DNA of 64,000 nt from Trichoplax adhaerens (Eukaryota; Animalia; Placozoa): positions 7,442,643 to 7,506,642 of the forward strand of contig NW_002060945.1 in NCBI RefSeq assembly GCF_000150275.1, given 5' to 3'. Both the position numbers and the translations under genes were made by a program. Shown one piece after another: positions 15,626-52,777 of this stretch; the first letter of the stretch is position 1, and each line of letters opens with the position of its first letter. The notes under the pieces were generated by a model, which worked only from the letters and a program-made list of their open reading frames with translations, made no database searches and had not been told where the DNA came from.

Positions 15626-15633
15626 TATAAATA
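15626..15633 (+). promoter_or_regulatory. Putative TATA box of gene A
   Basis: TATAAATA about 77 bp upstream of a GTAAG donor (15703) of a non-coding first exon. The same layout recurs at B, C, D, F and G. Confidence 0.55.
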
Positions 15634-15870
15634 GCAATTACTCCATACCCAAATCAGTAGAAGCGATTTAGAAATAAGCAATTATCGGAAACTAATTACA
15701 ACGTAAGCGTATGGAAATATGCGTATATTACTTGTTGGAACTAGTATCGACATCTGTGCTATTGCATTATATATTCTCTTTTTATTTTAAATGCGATATT
15801 CGGTTTGTAAATATGCAATATTCTTATATAGTCTATAGAGACGCACACGTATATACAAGGGTATAAAAGT

Positions 15871-17449
15871 ATGAAATTTTATCTTGGTATTCTTCTTGGC
15901 CTCTTTTGCTTACTGGCTATTGCCACCGCAGCAGAAGTTGATCAGTTGAACGATGGAGCATTCGCGGGATTATGGGATGAGCCTGAGATTGATGAATATG
16001 ACAAGGAAAAGGTCAATCAGGTACATTAATAGAATAGCTTACTTGGCTAAATTAAGTCACATGTAGAAGTTAATATTCTGGTATTAAAAGCAAACAGTTC
16101 TAAAATACTAAATTAATATAAATCATAAAGGATGAACCAGTTAACCGAGATGATTCACTAGCAGAATCTCATGATGTAGATGATGTAACCGGCGAAACAA
16201 CAAAGTCAGAAGAGGCTGGTCGCCAAAATGGTTTAGATGTGATAAAGGATTCATCAGAAGAATCCCCTGACTCAACAAATATCGTAGTAGATGAAACTAC
16301 TAAGAAAGAAGAAGTAGATGGCCAAGAAGAATCTAAAGGCCAAAATGATTTCGACGAGTTAACGGCTTTTACTCCAACAAGTAACACAGAATCAGAAGTC
16401 AAAGAAAATGAAGATCAAAATGAACTTACAGATTTAACCGCTGATAAAGAAAGTGATATCGATGAAATCGAGGTGTGATTATATGCTAGTTGATGATTAC
16501 ATATTATAAATGATTTTAAACTTGTTTAATCTACCTATAATTAGAGTCTGCTATTAAAGTAGCTACTCAATTTGTCAATATTTGCATACATCCTATTTGA
16601 CGACGTTAATCTGCATTTGCCTATATTAGGTTATACTTTCCTAAATAGTTCAATCAGAAAGGTGAATATTTCCTTAAATTTAGTTGATTTTTTTATTAGT
16701 CTAATGATGATCACTTGGCTAAGAGTGGAAGACGTCGCAGAAGAAGGCGAAGAAGAAGACGTTGGGTCAGTCGTCGTCGTCGTCGTCCTGTTGTACGCCC
16801 AGTACCCTGCCAAGCTATTAGTCTGAAACTTACGGCCTGTAAGAGCAACAATGCAGCATTAACAGCTAAGAATAGACGATTGAAAACGGATAAGACTCGA
16901 TTGGAAACACAAGTTCGTAGTCAGGGTAGTACAATCGGCCGACAGAGTGCAGAAATCACAAATCTGAAAAACGAATTAGCGGCATTAAAAGGGAAATATA
17001 ACAACTTAAATGCATCGTATGCACATATAAAGCGGGACAATGCTCGGTTGGCAGATCAAAAGCGTTTACTGATAAAACAAAAAAACCTCTTACGTATGGA
17101 AAATGATGAACTAAAACGGAATAATGCAACACTACATACTGAGAATGACCGATTAAGAAGTCAGTTAATATCGGCTCAGGCGAATAATCAACGTCTTCAA
17201 AATCAATTAAATACAGCTGAAAATAGTTTACGATCATGTAATGTAACCAAAAGCCAGCTGCAGGCATCAGTACTGCAACTTCAAACTGATCTTGCTCACT
17301 GCAACAGCCAGCGCTGCGTGAATTGCAAATGTAAGGCAGTTCCCATCACAAACAGGGAAATTCGAAGCGAAGGAAATTCAGCTGACGTACCGGTAGCAGA
17401 TGACTATGGCAGCGATGAAGAAAAAGTCCAATATGTTTCTTATGAGTAA
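15871..17449 (+). CDS. Gene A: secreted precursor with signal peptide, acidic pro-region, R11-W-V-S-R5 head, coiled coil and Cys cluster (~413 aa)
   Basis: Exons 15871-16020 (MKFYLGILLGLFCLLAIATAAEVDQ..), 16131-16472 (acidic) and 16700-17449 (SNDDHLAKSGRRRRRRRRRRRWVSRRRRRPVVRPVPCQAISLKLTAC..HCNSQRCVNCKC..). All introns are phase-0 GT-AG and in frame. Confidence 0.85.
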
Positions 17450-23400: not shown

Positions 23401-23780
23401 GCTCAACCTTTTTAATATTGTAACCATTAACGCGGTTATTATAAACAATTTTAAGAGTTCTATGGGTGATACTAATATCTACTTTCGCTAACGCTTAGAT
23501 ATTCCTGTATAATACTGAAAATTATTATGGTAATTCTTGCATGTTGTCCCGGCATTAAAAATTGGCTGATAGTGTTAATTATGTTACGATTATACTACAA
23601 TAGTTTTCAATGATAAATTACGGTACTAAATAGACAGTCAGAATTTTTAGTGATTAATGGTACTGTAGTATGAACTTACATCTTGGTGAAAAATAAATAC
23701 TTTTGATATGATAAAGCGAAACTACATAATTCTCGGTATCAAGATAATTATAACAATGAACTTAATAATCTTGCAAAGAC

Positions 23781-23788
23781 TATAAATA
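23781..23788 (+). promoter_or_regulatory. Putative TATA box of gene B
   Basis: TATAAATA, then donor GTTAGT at 23874 and acceptor ending 23975, just before the ATG at 23996. Confidence 0.55.
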
Positions 23789-23995
23789 CCACGCAATTTG
23801 CTATCCTTAGCAGATTTTGATTTGGGAACTAATCAGATTTTCGAGCCAAAATTAATCCGTCTCAACTGGCTAGGTTAGTAAGAAATTTATCTCCATAATG
23901 CGCCTAACGTAACTACTCACCTTTTTTAAACTAGTTGATAATTATTTATTATCTTTTTGCGTTATGATTGTGTAGGCTTGGTTGGAATTATAAAG

Positions 23996-25290
23996 ATGAA
24001 GTTCATTGTTCTTGGATTGCTTTGCTTGTGCATCTTTAAAGCATCTGGAGATGCCACTAATCCTTTAAATAATGAGGATAAAAATGCTGAGAACTGGAGT
24101 GCAAATCCTGATCACTCCTATGACGTACCGGTAAATAGCGGTGAAGATGTGGCTAAAGACGATGAAGGCCAAGAACTTAGCGATAAAAGTACTGAAGAAT
24201 TACAAGAGAAATTATCCACAGAGGATGAATCCGAAGAAAACAAGGAGGTCGAAATACCAGAATCTGCTAACAAGGAGGAATTCTTTGATGAGAAACAATT
24301 GGCAAGTGATAGTGAATTGAGTGAGACAGAGGTGGCGGATGATAAGGTCAGTACCGTTTGCTAATATAACAGCGAATATTGCACAAAATGAGGAGTGCTT
24401 CAAGTTTACATGCAAATCTAACTCTAGTATTGGTTCCACGCCACTAGTACCGATCTGAATTGTTCTTGCTAGCTTTACCTTCTCTATATCTGTACAGTGC
24501 TATGATTAATAATCTAGCAACGAGAACAATCTTCACTAATATGGATGATTGCTAGCCATAACTATATCCTGTTTGCTTACTTTAATGTTTTTTTCCTTTA
24601 TAGCAAGCTAAATCTTGGGGATGGCGTCGACGAAGACGCTATTATATCCGTAGACGACGTTCTGATCCATGCTTGTCAATTAGAGTTAGTCTAAATCGTT
24701 GTATTCAACGAAGAAATTGGCTACAAGCTAAAGTTAATCGATTAATCAATAGAATCAATCGGTTAAAGAGTAGAATTCAAAGAAAAAACGTTGTCATCCA
24801 AGGTTTAAAAACGCGTATAAGGCAATTGGTGAGCGTAATCAACAATTTACGAGCTCGCATCCAAAACTTGAGAAATTCCTTGAACCACGTGACACAAAAA
24901 CATAATGCCCTTGTTCAAAGATTTAACAAATTGCTCGCTTTAACACGAAAGCTAAAAGCGAAATACTTGATTCTGTCGGCCAAGTATAGGCAAATTTTAA
25001 CCGAAAACAAGCAATTACGAGCTCTGGTCAAAACGCAATCCAATCAGATTCAGTCTTTAAAGGGGCAAAATGCTCAATTACAAACACAAATTGTACAACA
25101 CGTACTCGACAAGAAGGCTTTGCGCGTTCAAGTCAAGAAGTACAAGCGTAAGTTTTACAAAGCTCAGTATGATCTTGAAAAATGTCGTCTCTGTTGCGAT
25201 GCATGTAGTCAAAAATATCCTGCTGGCAAAAATAGCACTGTTACAAATGGTGGAAGCACTAAAGCAGAGTTGACTGTTAATGATTTTTAG
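23996..25290 (+). CDS. Gene B: secreted precursor with signal peptide, acidic pro-region, SWGWR5YYIR4 head, polycationic coiled coil and CCDAC (~345 aa)
   Basis: Exons 23996-24346 (MKFIVLGLLCLCIFKASG..VADDK|gtcagt) and 24604-25290 (QAKSWGWRRRRRYYIRRRRSDPCLSIRVSLNRC..KCRLCCDAC..). Phase 0, in frame with ORF 24673..25290. Confidence 0.87.
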
Positions 25291-29895: not shown

Positions 29896-32800
29896 ATGAA
29901 GATTCGCCTTTTGGCCTTGATTTTTCTACTTGTAATCTCCACTGCTTATACAGAAGAGATTCCATCATCAGATAAAACCGAAAATGACTTTCTCAGAAAT
30001 ATCGCCAGTTCAGCAGTTGATAACGTACTATATAAGGAGACCAATAATCAAAATATCGACGATAATTCAGATAGTCAGAGCACCGAATCGGATAAAGCTG
30101 AAACGGAAGATACCAGTCTTCGCGAAGTAGAATTTCAGGATAACAAAGAAATTATTGATGAAGATGGTTTAACCAAGTTCGATAATGAAATAGAAGAAGA
30201 TAATTCGAATAAGGATGAAGACGAGCACGTAAATATCGATTAAATGATTGCTTAAAATATTTGATACTAATTTATATAGAATTAGTTTATAATAAGCATA
30301 GGCAGGTATTAAATTTATGGGATAGCATAGAGATCGTTTATTAAGTGTAGACGATTCTTCTAGTTCAACGTGTATAAATCTATGATTACTATTGCTACAA
30401 CGACGATAACAGATTGAGAATTAAGTAGAAAATTTCCTACGAGTATTTAAGCACAGAATATTAGCGTACTGTAAGCATATTACAAAAGGAACTTGACCTG
30501 TTACGAGCAGAAAAATATTTCAGTCGTAGAAAACTTTAACCTGTTAGTTGTGGGTGGTTTTAATCAATTATGATAGTATTCTAAATGGAAATGCAACAAA
30601 AAGAATTGCACCTGTTAAAAGTTATTAATATCATAGAATGATAAAGTTATCAGTTCAAATAATACTCGTATAGCTTTCAGAAGAAGTATTACCACTGGCT
30701 ATTAAAAATTGAGAATAGAGTTAATTTATATTGAAAGATACTTGGAAGTAGTTTCGTTCTACATATTAATTGCTTCCTTGGAATTGAAATAGAGGGGATT
30801 AATTTACTGAATGTTGATTTATCAGTATAAACTAATTTACAGCTAGGTATGTACTACTTCGGTACTGACAATTATTTGTGTGTTGGAATAGCAAGTCTGA
30901 TTTCTTTATCTGGATAATTAAGGAAAACATATTTATATACTGTAGTATTTCTGCAGTACACATTTATTTTAAATCTACGAGGAGTAGGATTAGTCGATCT
31001 TAAGCAATGTTTATATCATTCAATGCTAATCTAGATTGTTATTTTTCGTGCCTGTTTATTCGAATTTGAGTAGAAGAGATTAGCCCATCCTGAACGAAGT
31101 TATATCATACCAACAGTTTATTTATTTATTAAATTATGCAAGCTTAGGCTATTATTACAAATGCTTATTGGGAATAAGAGACGAACTTACATATATGCAG
31201 TACAATTTTATATAATCAAAGTGACTTTAATTACAATGTATATCTATATATAAAATAAAGATGCGCTTATGTGTTGCTGATAATATCTTAATGTAGTTCT
31301 AGTTCTCCATAATCTGATATAATCATTGTACCTACATATAACCTCCATAGAAATCATCTTGGGGTCGTCGTCGTCGTCGTTGGATTAGACGCCGCGTCGT
31401 CGTCGTCGCCGAACTCCGACAATCAATCCTTGTACCGGTTACATAACAAGTTTAAGACGATGCCAAAGTTCACGCAATGCTTTGCAAAGGCAAGTTTACA
31501 TACTAAGAAGACAAAATAGTATATTGCGTCGAACAGTTTACAATCAAGGGTTAATCATTCGTCGATTAAGAGCCAAAAATGTGCGTCTTGTTCGACAAGT
31601 GGCCTCACTTACAAGACAACTTCTCGTCATAAGGCGACAATATGCCGGTCTACGAGTGTGGTGTAATGGTAAGATAATCATATTAAAGCGAAGGATAAAA
31701 GCACTACAAGTGCAAATTCTCATACTTAGGAGGATAATTGCTACTAAACAGGCCCAAATCAATCGATTGTCTGCTGTAATTCGTGTTAAAAATTCGATTA
31801 TTAAACGGCTAAAAATAAGACTTATTTCCAAAGATGCCTTTATTCGTGGTCAGAAAATGATAATCGTCTTAAAAAATCGTAAAATTGCTTCCCTAAAAGC
31901 CCAACTATCTAGCAAAAACAGTGCCATTGGACGGTTACATCAAACCATTGCCCGTAAAGATGGCCTCATTCAGCAGTTATACGGTAGAATAGCTAAGAAA
32001 GATCGAACTATTTCTCAATTGCGTACAACCATTAACACCAAGAATCAAGAAATCACACGACTTAAAGGAATTATCTCTAATAAAGATCATAATATTACTC
32101 AATTGCAGCAAACTATCAGCAATAAGGAAACCACTATCGATCAATTACGACAAACTATAATCGTCAAAGATAGTCAAATCAGCCAATTGCAAAGTACTAT
32201 TAAAAGTGTGAATGCAGTAATCAATCAATTACGAGGTACAGTTGCCAATCAGACTGCTACTATCAGCAGCCTGCGACAAACTATCGGCAGTCAAAATGCA
32301 ACAATTCTGGAATTACATACTAAGGTTTTTAGTCAGACTCAACTTATTGGCCAACTTAATGCAACTATATTAAATCAAAGAATTCAAATTAATCAGTTAC
32401 ATGCCGTTATCGCTAGTAAAAATTTCACGATTGATAGTCAAAGTCAACAAATCACTGGATTGACTGGACGTCTTAGTAAGCTAAGAGCTAGAGTACGAAG
32501 GTTAAGATTTTCATTACAATCTCTAACGGCAACTGTAGGTACATTACGACAAAAAATTTTAAGATTAAATGGGAAGTATCAAGTGTTAAAAGCCAAAATG
32601 GAAACTCTCAATATCCAACATCGACATGTCCAAAATGAAAATACTCGCTTGAACTCAACTCTACAAGCTAAAAATAGTCAGATTGAACAATTGAAATTGG
32701 ATAAAATACATTTAAATAAGAATATTACGATATTGAAAAATCAGACTCGACATTTGAATCAAAAATTAGATGATCAAAACGAAAAATTTAAAAATCTGAC

Positions 32801-33074
32801 CGCAAGATTCGACAAAGCCGATATTTGTTGCCAGGCTTGTAATAGAAAACCCATATCCGAAAATCCGTTTAATGTAACATCGTCTAGTAATACTAAAAAT
32901 GAAGACGAAATAGCTTTTCAAGTGATATCAGAAGATGAGGTGAATGAAGAGAATCCATCGGAAAATTCGATAGATGAGAAGTCATCCGGAATTGAATCCA
33001 AAAAGAAAGATTCGAATGATGATCTTTCTGAAAGAGATTTTGATGAGAATACTTTGGAAATGAGTTTAATCTAG
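29896..33074 (+). CDS. Gene C: secreted precursor with signal peptide, acidic pro-region, SSWGR5WIR head, long coiled coil with 14-aa repeats, CCQAC and acidic tail; apparent 1-bp frameshift near 31394
   Basis: Exon 29896-30228 (..KDEDEH|gtaaat). The exon from 31351 reads KSSWGRRRRRWIRR but stops at 31444-31446. The long ORF frame reads RRRRRRTPTINPCTGYITSLRRCQSSRNALQRQ.. through to 33074. Close paralogue of D. Confidence 0.8.
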
Positions 33075-36000
33075 GCGCAAATACAAACTAATAAGTCTGA
33101 AAAATGATTAACAATATGTGTATTTATGCAACTAACTCTTCTATAAGAATAAATTATAGTGCAGGCATGCAATAGAAATATAGAATAAATTGCACTCTTT
33201 ATAATAGCCCAGGGTTATAGATTTAGCTTTCAGTTGTAAAAGTATCGAATTTCGTATTTATTTTGGCATAATGTTGCTGTATTTATTCTCTAGTGATATA
33301 ACATACTATAAATTTAGATATATAATAAATAATGCTTAAATGAAATGATTGCTCAGATAACTACCCTTTTTTCTGCCTGTTTACCTGTATTTGAAAGCTG
33401 TGCTTTATAGCTCTCTTTTAGGATAAAACGTTAGTAATTATCATGATACAATATGTATCATTAATTTGATTGTGCTGTCACATTGTTCGTCAATTTCTTA
33501 TAGGGTACATCTTAGTAAAATTAATAAATATACTATGAGTGCATAGAGTCCAAAAATAAAAAGAGCATGAATTTTCTCTACATAAATGTTGTGTTCCGTA
33601 ATTTTAGAAAATGGGAAACTACATAATATATTAAATTTATTCCATGTTAGTAACATTTAGATGCTCGCAGAATCTTACTCGAGAAGATATAGTATTGCAG
33701 GCCTTCATGTAGCTACCTTTTATTTTACATACCATAACATTTCTCTCGTTGATAGGCTTTAAAAAACACTTACATGAATAATGTAATACCGTATATTTTA
33801 CGCGTGATTTTATTTCACACGATACTAAAAGTAATTTAGCTATGTAAGCGATTTGTAAAATATTGTATTGAGCTAGTCGTAGTCATTGTAATTTTTTTTC
33901 TTCCCTACATACAATTGACAAATACCTTAATTGATCGATTCAATTATTTACAGGCACTAATAAATTTAGTGTATGCGAGAGGTGATCAAAAAGATCGAAA
34001 AGCTATCTTTCATATAATACATCACAAAAATGATCTCTCTTGAATCCTGTTTATCATTGTAAATTATTTAGTGTACATAAAGATTAGTAGCTGGTCAGGA
34101 CTCCAAGATTTGTCATCAAGCTAAAGTAGGACCATAAAATTTTAGTTACCCTAACCAATGACTATCGTTAAAAAGTGATTAGAAGAGATTAACAATTCGG
34201 TACTATAACTGAGGAGCAGTGTAGTTATACAATTAGAGTAGCAAACACTCATGATGTCTTCCTAATCGTAAGATACAACGTTTGAAGTAAACTAGTGCAA
34301 ACTCCCTTCGCTTTGCTGACGGTTTACGATAATGTGCTCATTTAACAGATAGTATTACCATTTGATAGACCTGTCAGAGGTTCAGTAACTTTTTACCGTG
34401 TACTGTATGCTGTACAAAAGTACTGTTTACTTAACAAAATCTTCCTATATTAAAAAGAAAGAAATAGTAGTATATGGTAGTTGTAGTGTATTTAGAATAT
34501 ACTGTAACTATATTCTACTCTTAAATATAGACATGTTGTATTGCTCTTATATTTAGACAGATCTACAGTCCGCTTACTCTACATTCATATATAGGCTACT
34601 GTATTTAGTTATTACGGTACTCGCTGTTTTCTACAATCATCTACTATTTTGTAACCTGTTATGGTATATGTTGTATCTAATTCCACAATCCTATTCTCTG
34701 CATGTGCTCTATCTTTAAAACTATAAATACCGGCGATTTCTACCTCAGAGTCCGTTAGCCTCTCAGTTAGTCTTCTAGTTAGTCTCTCACAGTCTAATAC
34801 TTCTACTCGTTACTCACGACAGCTTGCGCGCTGATCTACCGTAACTACCTCACTGTACTTCACATTACTAACCTACAATAAGGCATAACTTTTATAAACT
34901 CTTTGGTGTAATAATTGTAAATGGCGACTAAATCTCAATCCTCTGAGATATTGAACCCTCCATCACAGTAGTATAGTACTTCGATTTTGAGTTATAAACA
35001 TATTTTACGACATGTTGTTTAGTAGGTCGATAAAAATATAAAAGGGATGAAAGTGATGAAAGAGATTTTTCCTGATCCTCTCCACATGGAGCAAAAATAT
35101 TACTGGTATACAGATTTGAATGCTTACTGTTTATCTATTTTGTCTGCTTAAAATTCAAATTATAGACGTATGAAAGTATGCAAAGTTGCGAAAATTGTTT
35201 CTTGATGATATTAAAACTTTTAAATACATATTAGAGAACTTTTCATAAATGTTCTTTGCCTTACTAAATGTGTACATTAGTTTACTAGAGATGTACTATC
35301 TTCTGTTTTCTTCATCCCTGTGACAAAATTTAGTGAATGTAGCTTGAATATATTAAAATTAAGACCGATAAATTGCTGTAAGCTGCTACTCTTGAAAGGG
35401 CTGTTGTTAGAGGTCTGTAATAGAATTAGAGGGAGTATCAGTAGTTTATTTGAATATTATTTGCCTTGCAGGGAGTCATTACTGTATTATTTATTTATCT
35501 TCTGAGATACGCATAGATTATCGTACATTCTAGTTTTCATTTCCGACACCTGTTATTTAATTTACATATTTTAAACTCGATAACTTATGAAAGTAAGCTA
35601 TTACAAAGAAATTTTTAGAAGGTTTCTAAGAGAACTAACAGAAAGCGTTTTCCTTTTAAGTCCTTGCATATTATTATTTGTACAGACTAAGCAATCAGTT
35701 TCTACTTAAGAGTGAATGATATATATTTAGCGGGGAGATGAAAAAAATTGTACGGCAATACTCATAAATGATATCATAGTATAATGGAGTTTCGGACTGT
35801 TCTAATATCCGAAAGCAATTATGCTTACCCGGTATACGCTTAAGTAGTTACGAAAAATTATCATACGAATAGTGCTGTCTATTGTTTAGATTGTTTATCC
35901 AGTTTTTAAATAAAGAATAATTTTGTAAACAGCTTTGATTCCAAAGAGCCGTAAAATTCATTGGCTGTTTGAATCGGTCAAGATGGTTTTATGTTATCTT

Positions 36001-36999
36001 TGAGTTAAAGTAAGTTATTATCATTATTTTCTATACTTAGCTTTAAAGGTGAATTGAATCTAAAGTACATAGAAAGTTTGTTGTTAAAGGTAATGATTAA
36101 ATGCCATTAAGAAAAATAATGGAGAATGAATGATTGCGATAGATCAGGATAAAAAGGACAACAGTAATGTCTTGTTTCCTTAAGACCGTTTTAATTCAAT
36201 ACATGGAAAAATTCGTAATTTTCTTTGATATGACTGCATTAAATGTACACATAAAGTAAGCGCCCAATTTATTTCAGCATAATAGTATACCAGATAACCT
36301 GTAATAATTCTCTAAGTATATTTTGGATAGTTCTTTAGTCAACAATGTTTTACTGTTCTCTTAAATCTTTAGAAAAAGGAATGAATGTAATTTCCTGATT
36401 TACTTTCAGATTAGCTAAATTCCGAATATAAAAGTTCATCATTTAGCCATATGATTATATTCATCCATTCTTTTATTCTCGAATTGGCCTTTGTCGCCGA
36501 TCGATAATTGATATAATTATCGAAATACAGGTATAAGATTGCTGAGCGAATTTCTTGTGTATTTGTCATTTTTCACATACGTGTATAAGATTTTCATCTT
36601 TTAGAACGCCGTACGGTGCAATTTTAGCTTTATTATGAAACTAGGTTAAGCTACCGTACCGGAAAATTTATTTTATTGCACTATGTAACTATGTACAGGG
36701 CTCGAGATATTATGTCTTACCTGTAGTTTGTTATAATCGATAGTGCAATACGGTATTTCAGTGTACTCAAAGTATGGGCTAGTATTATTCATAAGTAATG
36801 CACAAGGCTATTTAATTCTAAATTTTTTATATTATTGCAGTTGGTAGTGAAAAGTTATGGTGTTGATTTTAGTTAGTATTCAATGTTAACTTACATCTTT
36901 TATAAGGTACCAATAATCTTTTCAGTTTTACTGAAAAGTATTTTATTCTGAAATTAGTATATCGCCTTACAGACTATCAATAAAGATACGTACTGAAAG

Positions 37000-39900
37000 A
37001 TGAAGATTCGCCTTTTGGCCTTGATTTTTTTACTTGTGATCTCCAATGCTTCTGCTGAAGAGATTCCATCATCAGATAAAACCGAGAATGACTTTCTCGG
37101 AAATACTGCCAGTTTTGCAGTTGACAGCATACTAGAAAACACTGAATCGGATAAAGTTGAAATGGAAGATACCAGTCTTCGCGAAGTAGAATCTCAGGAA
37201 TACAAAGAAATTGATGGAAACGGTGTAACCAAGTTCGATAATGAAATAGAAGAAAATAATTCGGAAAAGGATGAAGATGATAGCATTGATGGTGAAGGCG
37301 AGCAGGTGAATATCGACTAAAAGATCGCTTAAACATTTGATATTAAGTTAGAGAGATTAGTTTATAATAAGCTATGGTACCGGTAGGTTATTAAATTTGT
37401 ATGATGGTATGGAGATAGTTTATTAACTGTAGAGGATTCTTTCAGTTTAACGGGTATAAATATATGATAACTATTACTACAACTGCGATAATAGATTGAG
37501 AATTAAGTAGAAATTTTTTCGGGTATTCAAGTACGAAATAGTAGCATTCGGAACTAGCCTATTTGATCAGAAAAATATCACAGACGCGGAAAACTCTAAT
37601 CTGTTAGTTGAGGATAGGTTTAATCAATCGATTATTGTAGCATGCTTAATGGAAAGGCAATAAAAAGAAATGCGCATGTTAACAGTTACCAATGTCATAG
37701 AATGATAAAGTAATCAGTTGAAAGGAATACTCGTATAGCTTTAGAAGAAATATTGTACCTGGTTATTAAAAATTGGAAATAGAGTTAATTTAAGATGAAA
37801 GATACTTGGAAGCAGTTTCGGACATTAAAGTTCCGTACCTGCTCATTGAAGTTACAATATGGGCGTTTGTTCGTATGTTAGAGTAGAAAGCTCAGTCCCT
37901 CGAATCAAGAATAATAAATTAAAACTAGGTTATGCTTTCATAGTAATTATTTATTTGAAGCGGAGTAGAAGTGATTCAATTTGAAGAATGTTAATATCAA
38001 GAGAAATTAGGCTAACTAGGGATTATTGTGGTACTTTTTGCACATGTTTATTTAAATTTCATCAGAAGTGATTAACCCATCTTTTGAATTATATCAAATA
38101 TCACATAAACAAATCATTTATACCTCAACTAAGCTTAGATTTTCATCACACGCGGTATGTCTAATCGGCATGATCTAATCCTATGTAATCATGGTAATTT
38201 ATATGGCAATGTATACTGGATATAGTCCAAATATTTCATCTACTAGCCTACAGTCTAGCGGCATCTAATGAAATCGTGTAATTAACGGACAAGATATTTA
38301 TTCGGATAATGGGCGAAGATCGTATCTTTCAATGACTGTATTCGATCTCGGAGTCTATTGCGAGTGTTGTATGTAGATACTATGACTAATGGATTGGCTG
38401 CAATATGAAGTGGCGGCTTACAAACTTGCCTATATGTATTGTCGATAAAATCATAGAATAGTCCTAAATCTATATAACACTGATTATTATTTTTATTTAT
38501 ATGTTGTTTACCGTATAGAAAACTTTTAAATCATCTTGGGGCCGCCGTCGCCGTTTTCGTTGGCTTCGTCGTCATCGTCGCTATCGCCGCCAACAACCGT
38601 TTGTAAATTCTTGCTCTGGCTACATAACGAGTTTAACGCAATGCCAAAGTTCGCGTAATGCTTTGCAAAGGCAAGTTAATAGGTTAAGAAACCAAAATGC
38701 TCGCTTACGTCGAAAACTTTTCAATCAACGCTTATTAATTAGTCAATTGAAAAGTAAAAATATGCGTCTTTTTGGAAGAATAGCGATACTTAGGAGGCGA
38801 CTCCTCAACTTAAGACAACGATATACTAATCTACGAGGGTGGTATAATAGTACGATTATCACCTTAAAACAAAGAATAGCGATATTACGAGCGAAAATTC
38901 TCAGACTTAGGAGGATTATTGCTGTTAAACAAGCCAAAATTAAACGATTGATTGCAGTAATTAGCGTTAAAAAATCGATTATTAGACGCCTAAAACTACG
39001 ACTTATTTCTAAAGATGTCACTATACGTCGTCAGAGAACGATAATCGCCTTAAAAAATCGTAAAATTGCTACTCTACAAACTCAACTGGCCAATAAAGAC
39101 AATACCATTATACAGTTATATCAAACTATTGCTACTAAAGACAGTCTCATTCAACAGCTCTATGGTAGAATAGCTACTAAAGATCGAACTATTTCTCAAT
39201 TGCGTAGTACAATTAACACCAAGAATCAAGAAATCACACGACTGAAAGGAATTATCTCTAATAAGAATCATCGTATTACTCAATTGCAGCAAACTATCAG
39301 TCATAAAGATACTACTATTAGTCAACTACGACAAACTATAATTGATAAAAACGGCCAAATTACTCAATTGCAAAGTACTATCCAAAGTAAAAATGCAATA
39401 ATCAATCAATTACGAGGCACAGTTGCCAATCAAGCTGCTACTATCAATCATCTGCGACAAATTGTTACTAGTAAAAACACGACCATTCAGAAATTACAGG
39501 CTAAGGTTTCTAATCAGTCTCGACTTATTGGTCAACTCAATACAACTATATTAAATCAAAAAACTCAAATTAGTCAGTTGCATGCCATTATTGCTAGTAA
39601 AAATTACACGATTGATAGTCAAAGTCAACAAATCGCTGTATTGGCTGGTCGTATTGGTAAGCTTACAGCTAGATTACGAATATTGACGGTTTCATTAGAA
39701 TCTGCATCAGCAACAGCGGATACATTGCGACAAGAAATTAGAAAGCTTAACGGTAAATATGAAGTGTTACAAGCTAGAATGGAAACTCTCAATATCCAAT
39801 ATCAACATTCCCAAAATGAAACTGCTCATTTAAATTCGACTCTGCAAGCAAAAAATAGTCAGATAGAACAATTAAAATTAGATAAAATACAGTTAAATAA

Positions 39901-40282
39901 AAATATTACGACACTGACTAATCAGGCTCAAGATTTAAATCAAAAACTAGATTATCGAAATGAAGAATACAAAAATCTAACATTTAGATACGATAAAGCC
40001 GATATTTGCTGCCAGGCTTGTAACAGAAAACCCATACCCGATAATCCGTTTAATGTAATATCGAATGGTAGTACTAAAAATAAAGATGAAAAGGCTTTTC
40101 AAGCTTTGCTGGAAAATGAATTGAATGAAGAGAATATTTCGGAAAACAAGATAGATGAGAAATCGTCAGAAATTGAATCGAAGAAGGAAGATTTGGTTGA
40201 TAATCTGTTTAAGAAAGAATTTAAAGAGGACTCTTTGGAAAATGAGTTTGATCTATGGCAGACAAAGACTGATAAATCATAG
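37000..40282 (+). CDS. Gene D: intact paralogue of C (~689 aa)
   Basis: Exons 37000-37305 (MKIRLLALIFLLVISNASA..GEGEQ|gtgaat) and 38519-40282 (KTFKSSWGRRRRFRWLRRHRRYRRQQPFVNSCSGYITSLTQCQSSRNALQRQ..DICCQACNRK..). Phase 0, in frame with ORF 38663..40282. Confidence 0.88.
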
Positions 40283-42625: not shown

Positions 42626-44900
42626 ATGAATATTCGTTTCTTGACCCTGATTTGCCTACTAGTTATCTCGAAAGCATATACTGATGAGATTCCGTCATCG
42701 GATGAAAAAGATTATGATTTCTTCAGAAATACCGCTTATTCTGCGGTAGATCACGTATTAAGTAATGAGGCCAAAAAAGAAAATGACGAAGATAACGTTG
42801 ATAATAAGAATACCGAATCGGATATGGCTACTATGGAAGATGCTTGTTTTGACGAAGTGGAAATAAAGGATGGTGAAGAAATTATCACTGAAAATGGCTC
42901 AAATGCTTTAGAAAAGTTTGATAATGAAATCGCTAACGATAATACGGAAAGGGATGGAGACGATAGCATTAATGATGAAGATAAGCAGGTACTATACATA
43001 TCGACTAAAGAAACCGATTATGATATTTAATATTTATGAGGATTGGTTGTTCCTACGAAAAAGTACAGTTCAATTTATATGGTACCTTATGTATCCTATG
43101 TGGGGTATGAAAGATTCTCTTAACGCAATGTATATGAGTATAGGCTATTGCTATTACAACGATTATCGCAATTTCAGTAAAGAGTAAAAATTATTACGGG
43201 TACTTTAGTACAAAATCATTATTAAAGCTATTTTTATGATATAGCAAAGAATGATTTCTTTCATTAAGACAAATGTTTAAAGTCGCAATTTCCCGTACTA
43301 TATAGTATTAATGCATGCTAATTGAAATGAATGATTACCAGTACAGTATGCTTATTAAGAATAAAATAAGAAGGAAAACTGTCTTGGAAGTCATTTACCG
43401 TATGAAAATACGAAGTTACTAGTTCAAAGGGATTCACCTTGGAAATTGTACCATAATGTATCTGGTTGTTGCAAATAGAATTTACGATAGAGGATATTTC
43501 GAAATCGAATTCAACTAGTAAATAGTATCATAATATACCGTATTTAGCTGTTTGTAATAGAATTTTCGATAGAGGATATTTCGAAATCTTTGGCGATATC
43601 ATAGTATATGCCTATTAGAGATGAAATAAGATACATTAATCTATAAAATATAATAATCATTCATCAGTTTAAGCTAATTTACGTTAGATTTTCGCGATAT
43701 CGGTGCTTGTTCGGTTGTTAGAGTAGGAAGTTTAGTCCTTTTATGAGATTGTTAAAACTGTGAAAACAAGTTTAGATTTCAAGACGCGCGCAGTACCCTT
43801 TTATATCGAAATGTAATAAAATTTCTCCATCCTAAACAATATTGCTATCATAAGCAACAAATATTTCTCTATAGAAACCATGGAATGGCTCTATCTATTG
43901 ATTCTACAGTAAATAAACTGTGTCGGTATATTCTATCTTTTAATACCTATAGAATTCAGCTTCTCGGCATCGTCGTCCACGGCGGCGACATAGTCAAAAT
44001 TCAGGTAATGCTTTACGAAGGCAAGCTAACCAGGTGAGAAGACAAAATATTCATTCACGTCGAAGGATTCACTCTCAATGGGCTCCCAATCGTCGATGCA
44101 AAGTCACAACTGCGTGTCTTATTCGAAAAGTAACAAGGCTTAAGGGACAACTTACTACCGTAAACAATCAATATAGCAGTCTACTAGTATGTTGTAAAAT
44201 GCAGCTCACTGTATTAAAGCAAAAAATAAAACATCTACAATCAAAAATCACCCGTAAAGATGCGATTATTGCCGCGAAAGAAGCTAAAATCATTTTATTG
44301 AAAAGTCAAGCTGCAAAGGTGAACAGATTGCGACGAAAAGTTCGAAGACTAAAAGTGAAAAATCAGACCTTAAAAGCCTCGATGGCAACTGTTAATGCCC
44401 AACATCAATATGTTCGAAATGAAAGTATCCGCTTAAATTCGACTTTACAAGCTAAAAATAGTCAGATTGAACGATTGAAATTAGATAAAATAGAGTTGAG
44501 TAAAAATATTTCTATATTGACGAATCAAACTCGAGATTTGAATCAAAAATTGGACCATCAAAATGAAGAATACAAAAATCTGACCGCAAGATACGATAAA
44601 GCTAATATTTGTTGCCAGGCTTGTAATGGAAAACCAATTTCTGATAATCCGTTTAATATAACGGCGACTACTAATAGAACCGAAAATGAAGATGAAGAGG
44701 CTTTTCAAAGTGTGTTGGATAATAAGCTGAATGAAGAGAATATATCGAAAAATGGGATTGATAGGAAATCTTTAGAAATTGTATCGGAAAAGAAAGATTC
44801 GAATGAGAATCGTTCTGAAAGGCAATTTGAATCGAAAAAGAAAAGTTTGCGCGATGATCTCTCCGAAGAAGAATTTAATAGGGATTTTTTTGAAAAATGA
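42626..44900 (+). CDS. Gene E: shortened paralogue of C/D (~436 aa)
   Basis: Exons 42626-42988 (MNIRFLTLICLLVISKAYTDEIPSSD..DEDKQ|gtacta) and 43953-44900 (NSASRHRRPRRRHSQNSGNALRRQ..LNSTLQAKNSQIERLKLDKI..NICCQACNGK..). Phase 0, in frame. Confidence 0.85.
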
Positions 44901-46716
44901 GTTTAATCTAATGCAGACCAGTAAGTCTGAGCAATAACTAATTACATATATATACAGGAATAAATTGAGGGACGGACACGTAATAGAAATATCGAGTAGA
45001 TTAAACTCCTTACAACTGTCCTGGAATATAGACTTATCTTTCAGACGTAAGAATTAAGTATAATTGTTCATTTCTGTCTATACACTTGCATCTGGAAGCT
45101 GTGCCTCATATATCTCATTTAGGATAAAACTTAACCTTAGTAATTATCATAATAATTGTGATTGATCATAATTATTTATAGTATTCTAAAATTGTATTGT
45201 TTAGATTTGCTTATTCTACGTGTTCATTTTGCATCTATACCACGTATATTAATTAATCTACAGACCTATAACATGTAATTATTCCATGTTGCAAGTGTGA
45301 CCGACCACGTGTATAAGCCGCCACTTTCAGATCAATAAAGATAGAGTAGGAGTGCAAAATTTGTTTTACAAGAACTTCAACTATTTGATCAATTTTCTGT
45401 CTCCCCTACGAATTGAGAGTAGCACTTCAATACGACTGCTAGTATCGACTCTACGTATGAAATTAAACATAAGTTTGCAGTTTGAATTTATGTGAAAATT
45501 TTCGATACTGCTACGTGTTGCTGATACTGAAGAGTATGCTACAGAAATTCGGAAGGTTGCATAATAAAACCCGGCACTCTCATTTTTAATTAACGTAAAA
45601 CAAAATAAGTCCATGCCACTGGGAGGTTTTTAACTTACAGAGATAAGTAGTTACACCAAATTTCATGGGCTTACAGGTCTTTTCCATCATATTCCTGTTA
45701 ATGGTTGATTTGCAACAGCGATACGAGAAATCAATTGGACGAAAGGTTGTGTAATAGAATGGGATTATTTAATGAAATAATCGAAATATAGTGACGCTAA
45801 GCTAAAGGAATCTATCCTGTAAAATTAACCTAGGTGGAACTGATAGTTTAGCTAAGCTAACAGTAATCTTTCCTTCAAAAGATGTGGTGTAAGAGATGAA
45901 CATAAATATCATATTTGATAATCTATAGAATGAAAATTAACGATCAAATAACAGAATGAAACTATTTAAATTGTCGAAATAGTTTTATCCCTCTGAAGTT
46001 TAATGTAACATAAAAAGTAAACGAAACGTAATTAAAGCTTAGTCTAAGACTAAATTCTACGCAAATAAAGAATATAGAATCATATTGGAGATATAGCAGT
46101 TATTAAAGTTCGATCAATTGGGTTAATGATGTGTTCCGGCACAACACTGGTATGTTCATAGACAGTAATAGCAAGAAGTTATTTAAACATCAAAGGATTA
46201 CGATACAATTATTCTAATAATCCGATAGAATGCTGTTTGAAAAATGAATGAAAAGAAGCCTAATTAATGGCCATTCTATAATTAGCTTACTCTAATCGCT
46301 ATCTTAAATAATATTATAAGCGATGGACAATATAATGATATCTTATTACAATCAATTAAATAGAAATTAATAATAATCTCATGGTATGAAGTTATTTCAA
46401 GATAGCAATTGCTAGCTAGTGAGTATACTAGTAAATTTTAACTTCTAAACTGTAATTATAATTAATATATATATATTAACATATATATATATATGATTGA
46501 CAAGAAGAAAGAGATACTAATTAACAGTAAAGGTTGTACATTGAACGAATAATCAAAGCATTATCCTCTCGATGATATGACAGAATCTGAAATGAAAAAT
46601 AAGCTGAAAAGTAAATAAGGCGTAGTTTAGTCGCTATCTTGAATTCTTTTAGAAAATATGCCTTTAAAGAATTAAGAAATTTACTTTCTATTTACATTGC
46701 GTTTTCTAAATTACCT

Positions 46717-46724
46717 TATAAAAG
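46717..46724 (+). promoter_or_regulatory. Putative TATA box of gene F
   Basis: TATAAAAG, then donor GTATG at 46806, acceptor ending 46944 and ATG at 46982. Confidence 0.55.
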
Positions 46725-46981
46725 CAGTTACGTTCCTGTTATCATTTCATTCTTCATAGGAGTCGTTCGGTAGTTTTTCTTGTTTTTTTCTATCGTAACT
46801 AACAGGTATGTTATAGTATCTTTAATGTTTTTCTTCATCTCTTCTACATTCATCTTCTACGACTTTAATGCAGTCTGAATATGAATAGTGTTTCGATTTT
46901 AGTTCATTTCAAACTTTCAAAACTTTCTTTTTCTGTGTAATCAGACTTTACAAGAGCTATAAAAATATCCTTATAGCGATC

Positions 46982-47678
46982 ATGGTTCTACCATCGAATA
47001 ACGGCTTAGTTGTACTGGTGTTATTGGTAGCTTCTTCACCAATTGGGGACGTAATTGCATTGACTAATGAAGATATATCAGACAGAAAACAAATTTTCAA
47101 TGCCTTAGATGAACAAATGAGCAATCATGTTGATGAAATGGAACCTATTGATTTTTTGAATCTCCAGCGAGAATTTGATGACACGCAAGAAGAACAAGAT
47201 AGTTTCCTTTATGGACTACAAGATAAAAACGAGATTGAAGACAAGAGTGAGATTAATCCTTGGTGTAATTTCAAGGAAACGAACAAGAATATGGAGAATC
47301 AGAATAATTTAATCAATCCAAAGATGGTCCCTACTAAGAACAAGGTGATTTTCCTGTGATATGGATTTTTTCAAATTAAAATATTTTTTATGAGTTTGAT
47401 AGCGAAAATTACAATATCCTTATAGTAAATAATAAATCCATAAATAATATTTTAACAGTGTGTTTCTTACTTTACTACTCAATGATCTACAGAAAATGAG
47501 GATATCATGGGGTCAACGACAGCGGCTTCGATATTTTGCCTATCGTAGAACTATATCTCAGAATGCCGGCGGTACAGTAGTTTTGACTGCACGAAGACGA
47601 AGTTCAAGTATACGACACAGATCTACTTCCATACGACGTAGAAATTGGAAACCTTCTTACCCTTTATTTTTGATATGA
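46982..47678 (+). CDS. Gene F: secreted prepropeptide with acidic pro-region and a 61-aa cationic C-terminal exon, no coiled coil (~182 aa)
   Basis: Exons 46982-47344 (MVLPSNNGLVVLVLLVASSPIG..PTKNK|gtgatt) and 47493-47678 (KMRISWGQRQRLRYFAYRRTISQNAGGTVVLTARRRSSSIRHRSTSIRRRNWKPSYPLFLI*). Phase 0, and it shares the SWG head. Confidence 0.75.
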
Positions 47679-50600
47679 GATTTACGATATCGAATGAAAC
47701 CATAAATATCTCATACCACCCATGCTGTAAGTCTTTCATAATATCCCATAAACAAATGCACTGCCTACACGTACACTAAAAACATTCTGCGATTTTATAC
47801 ATAAATAATAAACTGTAAATCAACTGGTTTGAAGTTTTAATACAGTCTAGCATATCTAATAGATAATTCTGCTTTATCTTGTTATGGATTTTGATAGACT
47901 ATACGAAAATCTTCTTGCTTGATCATTAATAAAATATAGTCAATAAAAATAGATTTTACTTGCGCGAAAAATTTACTTTTGCGATGCATCCGATAGTTTA
48001 CATGTCATTAATGGTATGATAGATAATCGTACCTTGAAAAGAATATCAACTAAGATTGTTTTTCCTATAATTTCATCTAAGCTAATAAAATATGGCTTAG
48101 GCATGAAAGAAAACGGACTGCAATGGCTGTAGACTAACGTTTTAATAAAATTGATTTGTTTCCCTACGTCATCAACTTTTTGATACTTTATCCATGCACG
48201 GTGCTTCGTAATATTACTTTTTAGAGCGAAATAAAACTGCCACAATTTGTATGTAGTTTACTAATATAAAATGTATTCTAGTATACTTTTGCTTAACCTC
48301 ATTCATTTACAAATATCATGGAGATTTTAGGTTCGACATATAAGTATTGATGATCTCGCAAGTTTATGTGAGTTTATTCATGGCTCATTTCCAGATGAGA
48401 TAAATACAGAGTTAAAACGACTTTTCTCTCTGATTAACTATACACGGTAGAGTACGATATCTAATAAAGGAAAAGAGGAAAATGATTCTGTATACACCGT
48501 TTGCTATCCAGAATTTTTCAATAGTTTACATTTGATATATACTGACATAAATTATTACCACTTTTGAAATGTTGACATTATCATTTCCTTTATGACTTGG
48601 TAAACTTTATTACACATTTTACAAATGCATACGAAATAATATACGCCTACACTAGAAGTATGGCACTCAAATTAGTCCTAGCTCATGCAGTATACATTAC
48701 ATTATACTTTCTTAATTCAGTCTGGTTACGCATCTGCCCAGTAATCGAATGTGCAAGTTTTAAGTAATACTACACTACATTTCCCCAACTATTTAGGAGT
48801 ATGTCCATGGCAAACTAATTTTGCAACTTGTTTACCATAATTATCGTAGAAATGTTCTAGATTATTTCATTACTATCGTAATATAGAATTATGGCGTTTC
48901 CTCGACGAATTTTGAAGCTAGCATTCTTATCCACCTTTAAATTCCTGCCATCGCGACTGAAGGCCTTTTACCAAATATCTGAAAGCTGTGATGGCGCAGT
49001 TTCTAAACAATTCGCTAGACGAGATATCAGTAAAGAATTTCAGATGTGTGAGTATTAAAGATAAGTAAATTAATAAAGGATGGTGAGGGAATTAGAGCTA
49101 CTTACAAATAAGATATTTCTTACATAAATGAATAGAATTTCGAAAAAAATGTCGACTTTCTAATCTACGATTCTTAATTTGGTTACTAGGAAGTAAAGGA
49201 ATATTTAAATTGTCCAAGAAAGACGTTTCAAGGTTGTAGTGCTTGGGTTCAACAATCCCTAATTATACACACATAATACGAATAGTATAAGTACACCGTT
49301 TCATCAACAGCAATCATGAAATTACCGTATAAGTATCGTAGACTATTCTACTTCTTAATACTACCGTACTTCAATTACTACTGTAATTAGCTGAAACTAC
49401 TACAGGAGTGTATCGATTTGAGCAGAAATTTTAGTTAAATTTAATTTGTACTGTAAATTATTTTTGGAGCTTCACATACGATTAGGATTAAATTCATGTC
49501 AGTAATTGAACAGTGATAAAAATAGATAAATTAATTGAAGCCTAATTGATAAATAACCAACGAGTACACTTACAAAAACATACGGTAAAGGATTTTCCAC
49601 TAATGCTGTATCTAGAGCATTCATGTTTTAGCTGTCATCTAATCACTCCAACTCTATGATATCGTACAAATAGCGATCTAATGCCATGTAAGCCTGTATA
49701 AATCAGACCTTCATTGCTGCGAAGACAGTATATTTCAAGGTTAACTTTTACATAACACTTAGCATCCTGTAGATTAGCATTTTCATTAGCTGTTATTGAT
49801 AATAATAAAAATATTGTTGCTGTGTGGGCGATCTGCTATAGCTTATTCCGCTCATTAAGTATGTCAAACTCAATTTTTAAGATAATACACCCTTCCATAT
49901 TTAATTACAGACCCTTCAAGTTGGCTAGTCAGTCTTTTTTTACAACATCTTTATTACGAATATTATTTATTAGTAGATTAGAATCTAATGTGATTCATAC
50001 TACTACTTCCTTTCTCCCGTTACTATTTTCACAACATATACAATTACGCTTAAATCTATTTATGATTGTTATAAAATTAGTTTATGTCTCAATAAGCGTT
50101 TTCAAAATTTAAAATTAAGAGTATATTTTTAATTCCGTCCCAGTAAATAAAATCGGAGGTTACTACTTTCATTATATTAACAGATCACACGACAAGATCA
50201 TCGGATATAATACAGCAACAGTAATAACTTAAGCTATAATCTGATATGAATGCTTTACCCAAAATCATTGCTTTAGATTTGATACAAGAGCAAATGGATT
50301 GTTTACACTATTTCATTCGTTGATCCATACGCGTTCATCGCATATTTATTGATTTATTTTCCCGAGATTGAATCGAACCTTATCACAAATATGCCCATGC
50401 CACTCTCTTTGTAAAATATAGGGTAATGTGTTATAGAATTAGCAGTAGACTTCTTTTTTAATTGCCCTACGATTCTGATCATGAAATAATTTAGCCTAGT
50501 TATTATCCTGGAATAGTATCTTACATTGAGAAAGTCCCTTTGCAGCAAATTATCATATTGTAGGAATGCAGTAATCATGAGATCATGGATTACTGCGCTT

Positions 50601-52357
50601 TCTCCTTTTTGTTATGTAAATATCTATTATTTGGAATAATAGTAAACGGAAAGCAGTTTTTCTCTTAACGATACATGTCATCCCGTTTTTCGATCGTTAA
50701 TGTTGCAAACCAGTTTTGCAACCAAGGTAATATACATAATCGCAATAGCTCTTACTGTAAGTAGTTAGTCTCAACTACGATATCTTCTAAGAACATTATA
50801 TTTATTAAACCTAGCATGAGACCAAGACTTGATCAAATCATGACTATTCTATAAATATCTATCTTTAGCAATAGTTTGTATCGTGACAATAGATATCAAT
50901 TAATAATAGTTTCACAAATACAAAGATTATATAGCACCTGAATATCGAGAAACACCTAACTTTCGATAAAACTGCCCTGGATCAGAATTTAAGATCTATT
51001 TTACACTTATAATTTAATCATTATAAACTGATTATGGCGATTAGCTGTACTGTATAGAAGATAAATAGATAAGCTTTTCGAATTTTATTAGAAGGTTTTT
51101 GAAACGAGCTGAATGGTAATCGATACTTATAGTTTAAGAATACAGAACCAAATCGAAAATTTCATCCTAGTTATTCGTTAAACTGAAGATATTATATAAT
51201 TAAATCATAAATTGATAAGCATTACGTAAAATTATATTTTATTTTATATTTCGTATTATTTTTTTATTCTTATAAAAGCAAAGAAAGCATAGGGTTAAAA
51301 TGCTAGGTTTAGTTAGTTGTGTCTATCGAAAGTATTTACTTTATTTGTATTCTATCGAAATCTATTCCATATTAGTGACGCATGATAAAGTAGGAGTATG
51401 TTGATAAAGGTTCCGGCAATTCTATCGAATTATGATCATTCATTCGAAAGTCGGCTTGATTTCTCTAATGAATATATTGAGAAGAACAGAGATCTTCGTA
51501 TCGTGTTTGGTTATGAAAGTTCTATACCGATTGTAATAATTTCTTTGCATTGGGTTAACAATAAGCTCAATATTGAACATAGAAATGAACTACAAAATAT
51601 CACCGTCCTCTATTCTACTTAATATTGTTCATGATGATCCTTGATCTACCATACCAATCGAAATATTACTGACTATAACGAAGATGATAGCTACAATTTA
51701 TGCAAAACTAGTATATTGTAAATTAATTCTTTTTAATTTACTGTTGGCCATCAGAATACTTTCTATCATTATTGTAAATAGCGTTTAATATACGGAAACG
51801 AAACATGAGAAAGAAATTTTACGTTTGGCTTGCATAAATCTTATACACTCTTCGAAAGTAATAATTGCGATTTAATTCTCCAATAATACGGATATACTTA
51901 GTGAAATGTGAATAGATACGGTATGTATTCGTACCGGTTCATCATCCAGCTTTTAAATCAATTTCTTCGTTATTATGAAGTCATTAAATTTGTTCTGGAT
52001 CATAATAGCTTTGATAATTATGCGTTCACCATGAAACAACAATACGCTCACTCTTAACTTTCGATAAGCTAAGACACTAAAGAGATATAAATTAGCTGTA
52101 GGTTAACAACTCTCCGCATTTTAGTTCTGCTATCTGACAACTTGTTCATAGTCAGTTTTATCCTGAAGGATTATCACCATTAATCAAATTAATAGCTATT
52201 GGTAAGTATCTTACGTAATGTTTTAGAATATCTTTGTAAAAATTCAATTATCAGTCTTTCTTATCACAGATGTGGACAACTAAGTTTGATCAACCAGTGA
52301 TCTAAGTAATAAACTCTCTGCATTTATTGCTTATATCGAATAGAATAACCAACCATC

Positions 52358-52777
52358 ATGAAGTCGTGCGCTGTCTTTCTGCTTTGCATGTTTATGTCCA
52401 TGGTTCTTTCCATTTCGGCGGAAGAATTATCAGTAAATGATGCTGAAAATCTTGGAGATAAATTTAATCTCGGTGATGTACCCGATTTGAAGGACATGGA
52501 CGAATTAAAAGAAGAAAAACAAGAGGAAATAGATGAACAAAAATCCAAGGAAAGTGATCAAAAAGTCAATGAATTGCTTAAAGAAGCTAAAAGAATAGAA
52601 AAAGAGATTGAATCTTTAAATAGACAGCTCGATAATGAAGTAAAGGATGCGAAGGACCTTTCAGAAACAAAAAGCAATCTTGAGAATGAGAAAAATGGAA
52701 TGAGTTCACTCTCTGAGGAGGCATTGGAAGATAAGGAAATGTCTGATGAATCAGATAAAAGTCCTGAATACGAGTAA
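52358..52777 (+). CDS. Gene G: secreted acidic, partly coiled-coil protein (139 aa); no cationic second coding exon found
   Basis: Hydrophobic signal MKSCAVFLLCMFMSMVLSISA followed by a D/E-rich body. TATAAAT at 52086 and a GTAAG 5'-UTR donor at 52202, as in the other cluster genes. A possible donor (GA|gtaaaa) overlaps the stop codon. Confidence 0.7.
   Translation: MKSCAVFLLCMFMSMVLSISAEELSVNDAENLGDKFNLGDVPDLKDMDELKEEKQEEIDEQKSKESDQKVNELLKEAKRIEKEIESLNRQLDNEVKDAKDLSETKSNLENEKNGMSSLSEEALEDKEMSDESDKSPEYE

Follow-up and report, generated by a model that had tools for sequence, protein, structure and literature searches.

What kind of secreted protein is produced from a tandem gene cluster of the placozoan Trichoplax adhaerens in which strongly acidic and strongly basic parts are joined within single precursors? 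The cluster spans 37 kb and lies in a stretch of 64,000 nucleotides of contig NW_002060945.1 (hereafter the window; G000:C1412:7442643-7506642, GC content ~32%) of a genome of 105.6 Mb in 1414 contigs, which was searched in the course of the analysis. Its seven genes, designated A to G, all lie on the forward strand as stop-to-stop frames, and the original prediction that each combines a signal peptide with a strongly acidic region is borne out by the frames, by hydropathy, and by composition. The cluster is a tandemly duplicated, placozoan-restricted family of secreted pre-pro-proteins. The reading we favor, at slightly less than even confidence, is that these are polyanion-binding defense proteins, dimeric rods with Arg/Trp heads from which the acidic pro-part would be removed.

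All seven N-termini contain a 10-residue stretch with a mean Kyte-Doolittle hydropathy of 2.8–3.7, with the first acidic residue at position 19–23; signal peptides were judged by these two properties rather than by a dedicated predictor. The rest of the first part comprises 23–35% Asp and Glu in all seven, with an isoelectric point (pI) of 4.0–4.3 and net charges of −13 to −36. In A–F the acidic part closes at a phase-0 GT donor, and the Arg-rich exon begins after an AG acceptor, so that the predicted passage from a phase-0 intron into an Arg-rich exon is found with canonical junctions in all six. For two of them the proposed splice is also present in RNA: contigs from three independent studies join 42986/8 to 43951/3 in gene E (splice 42988|43953) and 47342/4 to 47491/3 in gene F (47344|47493), in both cases across GT..AG. 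The junctions of A–D match database gene models. Gene A departs from a two-exon reading in having an extra intron inside the pro-part, and thus three coding exons. The genes, with the database models from strain H1 and from Trichoplax sp. H2 (lengths in amino acids, aa), are as follows.

15871..17449, forward strand: gene A; coding exons 15871-16020 (signal), 16131-16472 (acidic, net −29), and 16700-17449 (head, coiled coil, Cys cluster); H1 model not found; H2 model 413 aa (P0007), with junctions as in this analysis.
23996..25290, forward strand: gene B; exon 1 23996-24346 (signal and acidic part, net −24) and exon 2 24604-25290 (in order, head, C-x9-C, 183-residue helix, C-x2-CC-x2-C); H1 model XP_002110627.1, 345 aa (P0006); H2 model TrispH2_002207, 345 aa (P0005).
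29896..33074, forward strand: gene C; exon 1 29896-30228 and exon 2 31351-33074, with the rod frame open over 31389-33074; H1 model not found; H2 model 685 aa.
37000..40282, forward strand: gene D; exon 1 37000-37305 (signal and acidic part, net −21) and exon 2 38519-40282 (head, C-x9-C, basic coiled coil without Asp or Glu, 14-residue Q/T/N-rich repeats, then mixed-charge coil, CC-x-x-C, and acidic tail); H1 model not found; H2 model 689 aa.
42626..44900, forward strand: gene E; exon 1 42626-42988 and exon 2 43953-44900, with a transcript extending to at least ~45148; H1 model TRIADDRAFT_54838, XP_002110630.1, 436 aa (P0001), identical to this splice; H2 model TrispH2_002210, 436 aa (P0003).
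46778..48166, forward strand: gene F, without a rod; coding sequence of exon 1 46982-47344 (signal and acidic part, net −13) and of exon 2 47493-47678 (61 aa, net +16, no acidic residues, SWG motif), with an intron in the 5′ untranslated region (46803-46941) and a poly(A) site at 48166, both from RNA contigs; H1 model a 125-aa unspliced read-through of exon 1 (P0002); H2 model TrispH2_002211, 183 aa (P0004).
52358..52777, forward strand: gene G; single exon encoding a secreted acidic protein of 139 aa, net −21, without a cationic part; H2 model 139 aa.

The H2 annotation lists all seven as hypothetical proteins and calls no further gene between them. Going by gene order they carry the identifiers TrispH2_002206-002212, of which 002207, 002210, and 002211 are confirmed. 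That the architecture is hidden by the calling of open reading frames is therefore true of prokaryote-style frame lists and of the H1 model of F, but not of the H2 annotation, where all seven are spliced. In gene C of the present assembly, a frame break in a (CGT)n tract at ~31376-31392 separates the head (from 31351) and the rod: the tract has one base fewer than its H2 counterpart, and in H2 the head continues into the rod in an intact gene; the continuity predicted for this gene is thus a property of the H2 allele, whereas in this assembly the two parts lie in different frames.

The description of the cluster as one seven-gene family agrees with layout, position, and orientation, but the sequences of F and G reveal no homology to the other members. 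Clear homology links the acidic exons of C, D, and E (E = 1e-27 to 1e-42), and those of A, B, F, and G have no significant similarity among themselves or to C, D, and E. Gene F joins the family by position, orientation, exon structure, and the S-W-G motif, not by homology, and gene G, which joins by position and composition, is a possible associate of the cluster.

The two halves of the precursors differ sharply in charge. Cationic exons have a pI of 10.3–12.0, and those that bear rods carry a net charge of +28 to +67; the net charges of acidic and cationic parts are −36/+28 in A, −24/+47 in B, −21/+62 in C, −21/+67 in D, −24/+34 in E, and −13/+16 in F. Whole precursors of B, C, and D remain positive, at about +23, +41, and +46, respectively. 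The label "charge-masked" that was first given to these proteins thus suits the heads as well as A, E, and F, but does not hold for B–D taken whole, and full charge compensation by the pro-part was rejected on these figures. Long stretches at the start of the cationic exon are free of Asp and Glu (the first 148 residues in C, 165 in D, and 102 in E), and B has a single such residue before residue 134. Enrichment of N-glycosylation sequons was not significant in C and D (P ~0.1), and was significant in E only.

The heads as read from the exons are the same as first reported: K-S-G-R11-W-V-S-R5 in A, K-S-W-G-W-R5-Y-Y-I-R4 in B, K-S-S-W-G-R5-W-I-R.. in C, SRHRRPRRRH in E, and SWGQRQRLRY in F. Their common form, following the phase-0 intron, is W-G, an Arg tract, three hydrophobic or aromatic residues, and a second Arg tract; the tracts comprise 4–11 residues and adjoin Trp or other aromatics. 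None of the cationic parts of A–F ends in Gly, and F ends ..L-F-L-I.

Behind the heads, a peak of hydrophobic periodicity at exactly 3.5 residues is seen in A–E, with z = 7–32 above shuffles (7.7 in A, 32 in C), and the same test gives no heptad signal in F and G. Together with Cys at core positions, this upholds the proposed heptad coiled coil with a Cys cluster in five of the genes. The register is most extensive in gene D, where it runs unbroken over about residues 106–480 of the exon (~375 residues), with a second register at about 36–100; of 53 heptads, 37 have Ile at position a, and position d is Leu in 30 and Lys in 15. By the classical GCN4 core rules, Ile at a with Leu or Lys at d favors two strands, so that this core make-up suggests that the rods of A–E would be dimers. 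The idea of several heads displayed on an oligomeric rod keeps its regular coiled coil, but is weaker than first claimed, as the core points to two strands. The N-terminal C-x9-C of A–D falls on a and d, and the C-terminal CC-x-x-C of B–E on g, a, and d; Cys in core positions at both rod ends fits parallel, in-register chains that would be stapled by interchain disulfides. In heptad periodicity and in core Cys at the rod ends, these rods agree with the parallel, disulfide-stapled class of extracellular coiled coils. In an AlphaFold2 model of B, residues 17–136 (acidic part and head) are disordered, with a predicted local distance difference test score (pLDDT) below 50, and residues 139–321 form one helix with pLDDT >90 that spans both Cys groups.

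The middle parts of C and D contain I-A-T-K-D-like 14-residue repeats, which are two plain heptads with Lys at d. Alpha/beta coiled coils with a MATKDD motif and beta-layer need hexad or nonad insertions (Hartmann et al. 2016; PMC4786415). A beta-layer reading of the repeats was dropped because their period of 14 equals two plain heptads; the register is unbroken and there are no 6- or 9-residue units.

Rods that are long, regular, and disulfide-stapled are typical of extracellular structural coiled coils, and the opposite charge blocks within each precursor could drive packing or coacervation. This raises the possibility, which we consider real but doubtful, that the proteins are structural cargo, either a secretory-granule matrix in the form of a condensing or expanding lattice, or a secreted fiber, adhesive, or mucus cross-linker. 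In ciliates, the proteins of granule lattices and trichocyst matrices derive from coiled-coil precursors by processing, and we count them in its favor, as we do the neighboring secreted acidic protein G, which could serve as counter-ion. On the other side, extracellular fibers of such a kind are undescribed in placozoans, the head motif is common to short peptides that have no rod (see below), and the rodless F gave the deepest RNA contigs, although contig depth is a poor measure of expression.

For the search of relatives, exons were used singly, and full-length analyses were restricted to natural database proteins (P0001, P0003-P0007). No known structural family emerged at cut-off from the full-length proteins: every Pfam match lay below it and was generic coiled coil only, in agreement with the original prediction. 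Among single exons, only SlyX (C, D) and HALZ (A) passed, marginally, as generic coiled-coil matches. Lebercilin, after which UniRef names E "Lebercilin domain-containing", was rejected at 17.4 bits against a cut-off of 34.3. A PDB sequence search gave two weak coiled-coil matches only, and a search of the ESM Atlas for a named family gave nothing usable. A profile of 148 C-terminal columns, run against 1.84 billion representatives, retrieved only Trichoplax members, followed by coiled coils of bacteria and phages that lack the architecture; word-indexed protein searches returned H1 and H2 proteins only. No homologues were found outside Trichoplax, in libraries that may not include the Hoilungia and Cladtertia proteomes. 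The sole named database match to the second exon of gene D was TRIADDRAFT_54838, that is, gene E, and paralogues are only 20–26% identical. No rods were found elsewhere in the 105.6-Mb genome; one further locus (L005) was rejected as a family member and is an unrelated Ser/Arg-repeat gene. It should be noted that the original description as a "candidate new effector system" with no named family was overstated: the genes already have annotations as hypothetical proteins, and one of them has been published as the marker of a cell type. The precursor layout, the short peptides discussed below, the gene annotations, and gene B as marker are already known, whereas the rod-bearing long form, its Cys geometry, and the link to short peptides appear to be undescribed in the literature searched.

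A W-G-Arg4 pattern gave 19 genomic matches, versus 3 in the control. Apart from C and D, these are short exons starting (W)W-G-polyArg and mostly ending G-K-K(K/R). At least four such loci have a signal and acidic exon upstream, with the phase-0 intron shared with the cluster genes. The exon at C1410:626823 (L028) has the design of heads A–C, an Arg tract, three hydrophobic residues, and an Arg tract, and near 7.419 Mb of C1411 exon 1 has a signal peptide and an E-E-I-P-S motif resembling C, D, and E (BLASTP versus C, E = 6e-6). No full-length alignment of short precursors with cluster genes was significant. Because these short precursors repeat both the W-G-polyArg head and the exon layout, the cluster may be regarded as their long, rod-bearing form; in motif and exon structure, the sequences show a probable kinship with short W-G-polyArg (arminin-like) precursors. 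The arrangement of signal peptide, acidic pro-part, and cationic part known from antimicrobial peptide precursors, which the original prediction had invoked, is thus real and recurs in the short genes.

Some of the short exons are themselves duplicated. Three copies 202 bp apart lie at G000:C1411:7419451-7419871 (L032:4452-4872), and two copies 145 bp apart at G000:C1411:7396093 and 7396238 (L030), in each case with one signal and acidic exon upstream; these may be tandem, perhaps mutually exclusive, exons of arminin-like peptide genes. Short W-G-polyArg exons with G-K-K(K/R) amidation-signal ends also lie at C1410:626823, C1331:25345 (L022), C1364:36601 (L023), and C1378:45592 (L024). L022 and L023, each on a small scaffold, are almost identical to one another and could be allelic copies that were assembled separately.

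Such ends on the short relatives invite a prohormone interpretation, in which the Arg tracts are convertase sites and the Gly before them in A, C, and D is an amidation donor; the acidic peptide would then be released separately, along with a small amidated peptide and a rod devoid of its head. The S/W-G followed by at least four Arg in A, C, and D is indeed the classical X-Gly-basic processing signal, and the metacells that express B are classed "peptidergic" (Mayorova et al. 2025; PMC12013895). We nevertheless regard this as improbable: no Gly-basic arrangement occurs in B (W-G-W-R5), F (W-G-Q-R-Q-R), or E, tracts of 5–11 Arg in a conserved design of tract, three hydrophobics, and tract exceed the needs of a cleavage site, and the putative small peptides are not conserved across paralogues.

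The expression of one member is documented in the literature. Gene B (XP_002110627.1, annotated as "expressed hypothetical protein") is very probably Ta 63786: an offset of 36 between XM and XP numbers joins it to XM_002110591.1, and we make this identification because the offset holds for an astacin pair too, XM_002110640.1 (PMC12013895) leading to XP_002110676, the Trichoplax astacin of another paper. Ta 63786 is a fluorescence in situ hybridization marker of a ciliated epithelial secretory cell type, labeling scattered small ciliated cells of the dorsal epithelium as well as cells of the ventral epithelium 10–40 µm from the rim (Mayorova et al. 2025; PMC12013895). The same study describes "arminin-like" putative antimicrobial peptide (AMP) precursors, AMP1–4, in Trichoplax, and the ventral Ta 63786 cells coexpress AMP4 (Ta 64402). 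Ta 63786 metacells, the "peptidergic" ones mentioned above, also express the intelectin Ta 64393, which is absent from other metacells (PMC12013895). Hoilungia H13 was reported to have an orthologue of Ta 63786, and Cladtertia H23 to have none (PMC12013895). The proposed expression in secretory cells is therefore supported for B, as the probable Ta 63786, in the epithelium. Two further points favor structural cargo: the ventral B-positive cells are located where Type 1 gland cells with large electron-dense granules occur, and lipophil cells carry another secreted basic helical protein, Ta 63996, as major cargo. Ta 63996 is the main secreted protein of these cells, with extended helices rich in basic residues (PMC12013895). 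Compared by description, it is a parallel case at another locus and in another cell type, Lys-rich and not Arg-rich; searches of the Trichoplax genome with cluster sequences brought up no similarity at Ta 63996.

H1 and H2 diverge by 0.69% in the coding parts compared and by 0.81% in noncoding sequence. The coding changes comprise 20 nonsynonymous and 8 synonymous substitutions, with a ratio of nonsynonymous to synonymous rates (dN/dS) of ~0.8, besides a one-codon indel in the cationic exon of F. This ratio fits weak constraint or mixed selection regimes and is usual for fast-evolving secreted defense genes; fast, weakly constrained evolution would be atypical of a lattice protein. The dN/dS value, the broken frame of C in the reference, and Pfam matches to generic coiled coil only would also agree with an orphan or decaying cluster without specific function, or with misannotated intracellular coiled-coil proteins. 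This explanation is hardly credible, as open frames, canonical splice sites, signal peptides, and core Cys pairs are kept at 20–26% identity, spliced transcripts exist for E and F, expression of B strongly marks a specific cell type, the H2 copy of C is undamaged, and the Lebercilin match of E is far below cut-off.

Six sites in the rod of E (44138-44403) distinguish the RNA contigs of three studies from the reference, and at three of them (44138, 44367, and 44403) the contigs carry the H2 allele; the sequenced laboratory strains are therefore not identical to the reference strain. Just downstream of E, at 45148, H2 has a 234-bp stretch (L017:12524-12757) that is absent from this assembly. It is probably present in the laboratory strains, as suggested by loose ends of RNA contigs, and has neither a terminal inverted repeat nor another copy in the window. 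In the spacer between C and D (34162-34421), a self-overlap of the H2 alignment suggests a tandem duplication of ~260 bp in this assembly as compared with H2.

If the cluster encodes polyanion-binding defense proteins, the acidic pro-part would keep the polycation in solution and prevent it from doing harm on its way through the secretory pathway. It would be cut off near the exon junction, since acidic residues just before the junction recall acidic processing sites (PMC12013895). The freed rod would present at least two Arg/Trp heads together with a 100–165-residue acid-free amphipathic basic helix, and its targets would be polyanions, for example microbial envelopes or biofilm polymers, on which it may act as a binding, agglutinating, or membrane-attacking defense protein. 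Production, judging from the literature on gene B, would take place in specialized ciliated epithelial secretory cells. Several points weigh against such a function. Antimicrobial activity is itself only putative for the short arminin-like genes, the pro-parts of B–D cancel at most half, and as little as a third, of the positive charge, the identity of B with Ta 63786 depends on an accession offset for which one further pair served as a check, and a near-neutral dN/dS equally fits low constraint of any kind. A bolder proposal, which we consider unlikely, is that at least two AMP-type Arg/Trp heads held permanently on a disulfide-stapled rod of 25–55 nm, with an acid-shielded precursor, represent an unrecognized class of animal host defense. 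It would have originated in placozoans, by extension of a short arminin-like gene, or else the short peptides arose by truncation, as F suggests.

The cluster can be compared with several known systems. Like the arminin-like precursors (Trichoplax AMP1–4 and the Hydra arminins), its proteins have a signal peptide, an acidic pro-region, and then a basic region, and B is coexpressed with AMP4. Mature parts of arminin-like precursors, however, have ~30 residues and a Gly end for amidation, in a precursor of ~150–250 aa, whereas A–E measure 345–689 aa, with a cationic exon of 230–590 residues that includes rod and Cys staples, and with an acidic tail in C–E; F has 182–183 aa but no Gly end. This comparison follows the published description of AMP1–4, with which the short W-G-polyArg loci are not equated. 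Trp/Arg-rich antimicrobial and oligo-arginine cell-penetrating peptides, such as the lactoferricin core, indolicidin, and R9–R11, are free and short; they resemble the heads in composition, but in the cluster the head is followed by a long rod, of which it forms the N-terminus. Cationic granule proteins with charge-neutralizing pro-pieces, such as eosinophil pro-MBP and the alpha-defensins with their pro-segments, likewise place an anionic pro-part before a cationic part, but have no homology to the cluster, in which neutralization is incomplete in B–D. Collectins (SP-D), scavenger receptor A, laminin, and the fibrinogen rods are extracellular disulfide-linked coiled-coil oligomers that display binding ends. 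The cluster proteins share with them a secreted rod, Cys at the coil ends, and putative polyanion-binding ends in multiple copies, but are without collagen, lectin, laminin, or fibrinogen domains; matches to Pfam Fib_alpha, ANG-1, and PAN_4 lay far below cut-offs.

The surroundings of the cluster contain other kinds of genes. Upstream, on the reverse strand, two open frames with a clear cyclin box (8007-8736) are exons of an A/B-type cyclin gene, and an open frame at 3291-3728 consists mostly of V-Q-F-S-S-type five-residue tandem repeats, with local GC content raised to 0.40. Downstream, also on the reverse strand, lie long Ser/Asn/Lys-rich open frames of 442 aa (54519-55844) and 741 aa (58856-61078), the latter with an exact internal duplication of ~40 residues; a minus-strand H2 gene of 1531 aa starts at these frames.

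Placozoans are among the simplest animals, and their surface defense and feeding are barely understood. If the favored defense function is correct, this orphan cluster would tie short putative antimicrobial peptides to large rod-shaped proteins, and the Ta 63786 secretory cell type would gain a molecular product with a testable activity. A head-on-rod protein of this kind would act like a collectin with a cationic peptide as its recognition head, and, as a natural multivalent display of poly-Arg/Trp on a rigid coiled coil, it would be of interest for the design of antimicrobials and biomaterials. Were the proteins instead structural cargo, the cluster would provide an animal counterpart of the ciliate granule-lattice proteins.

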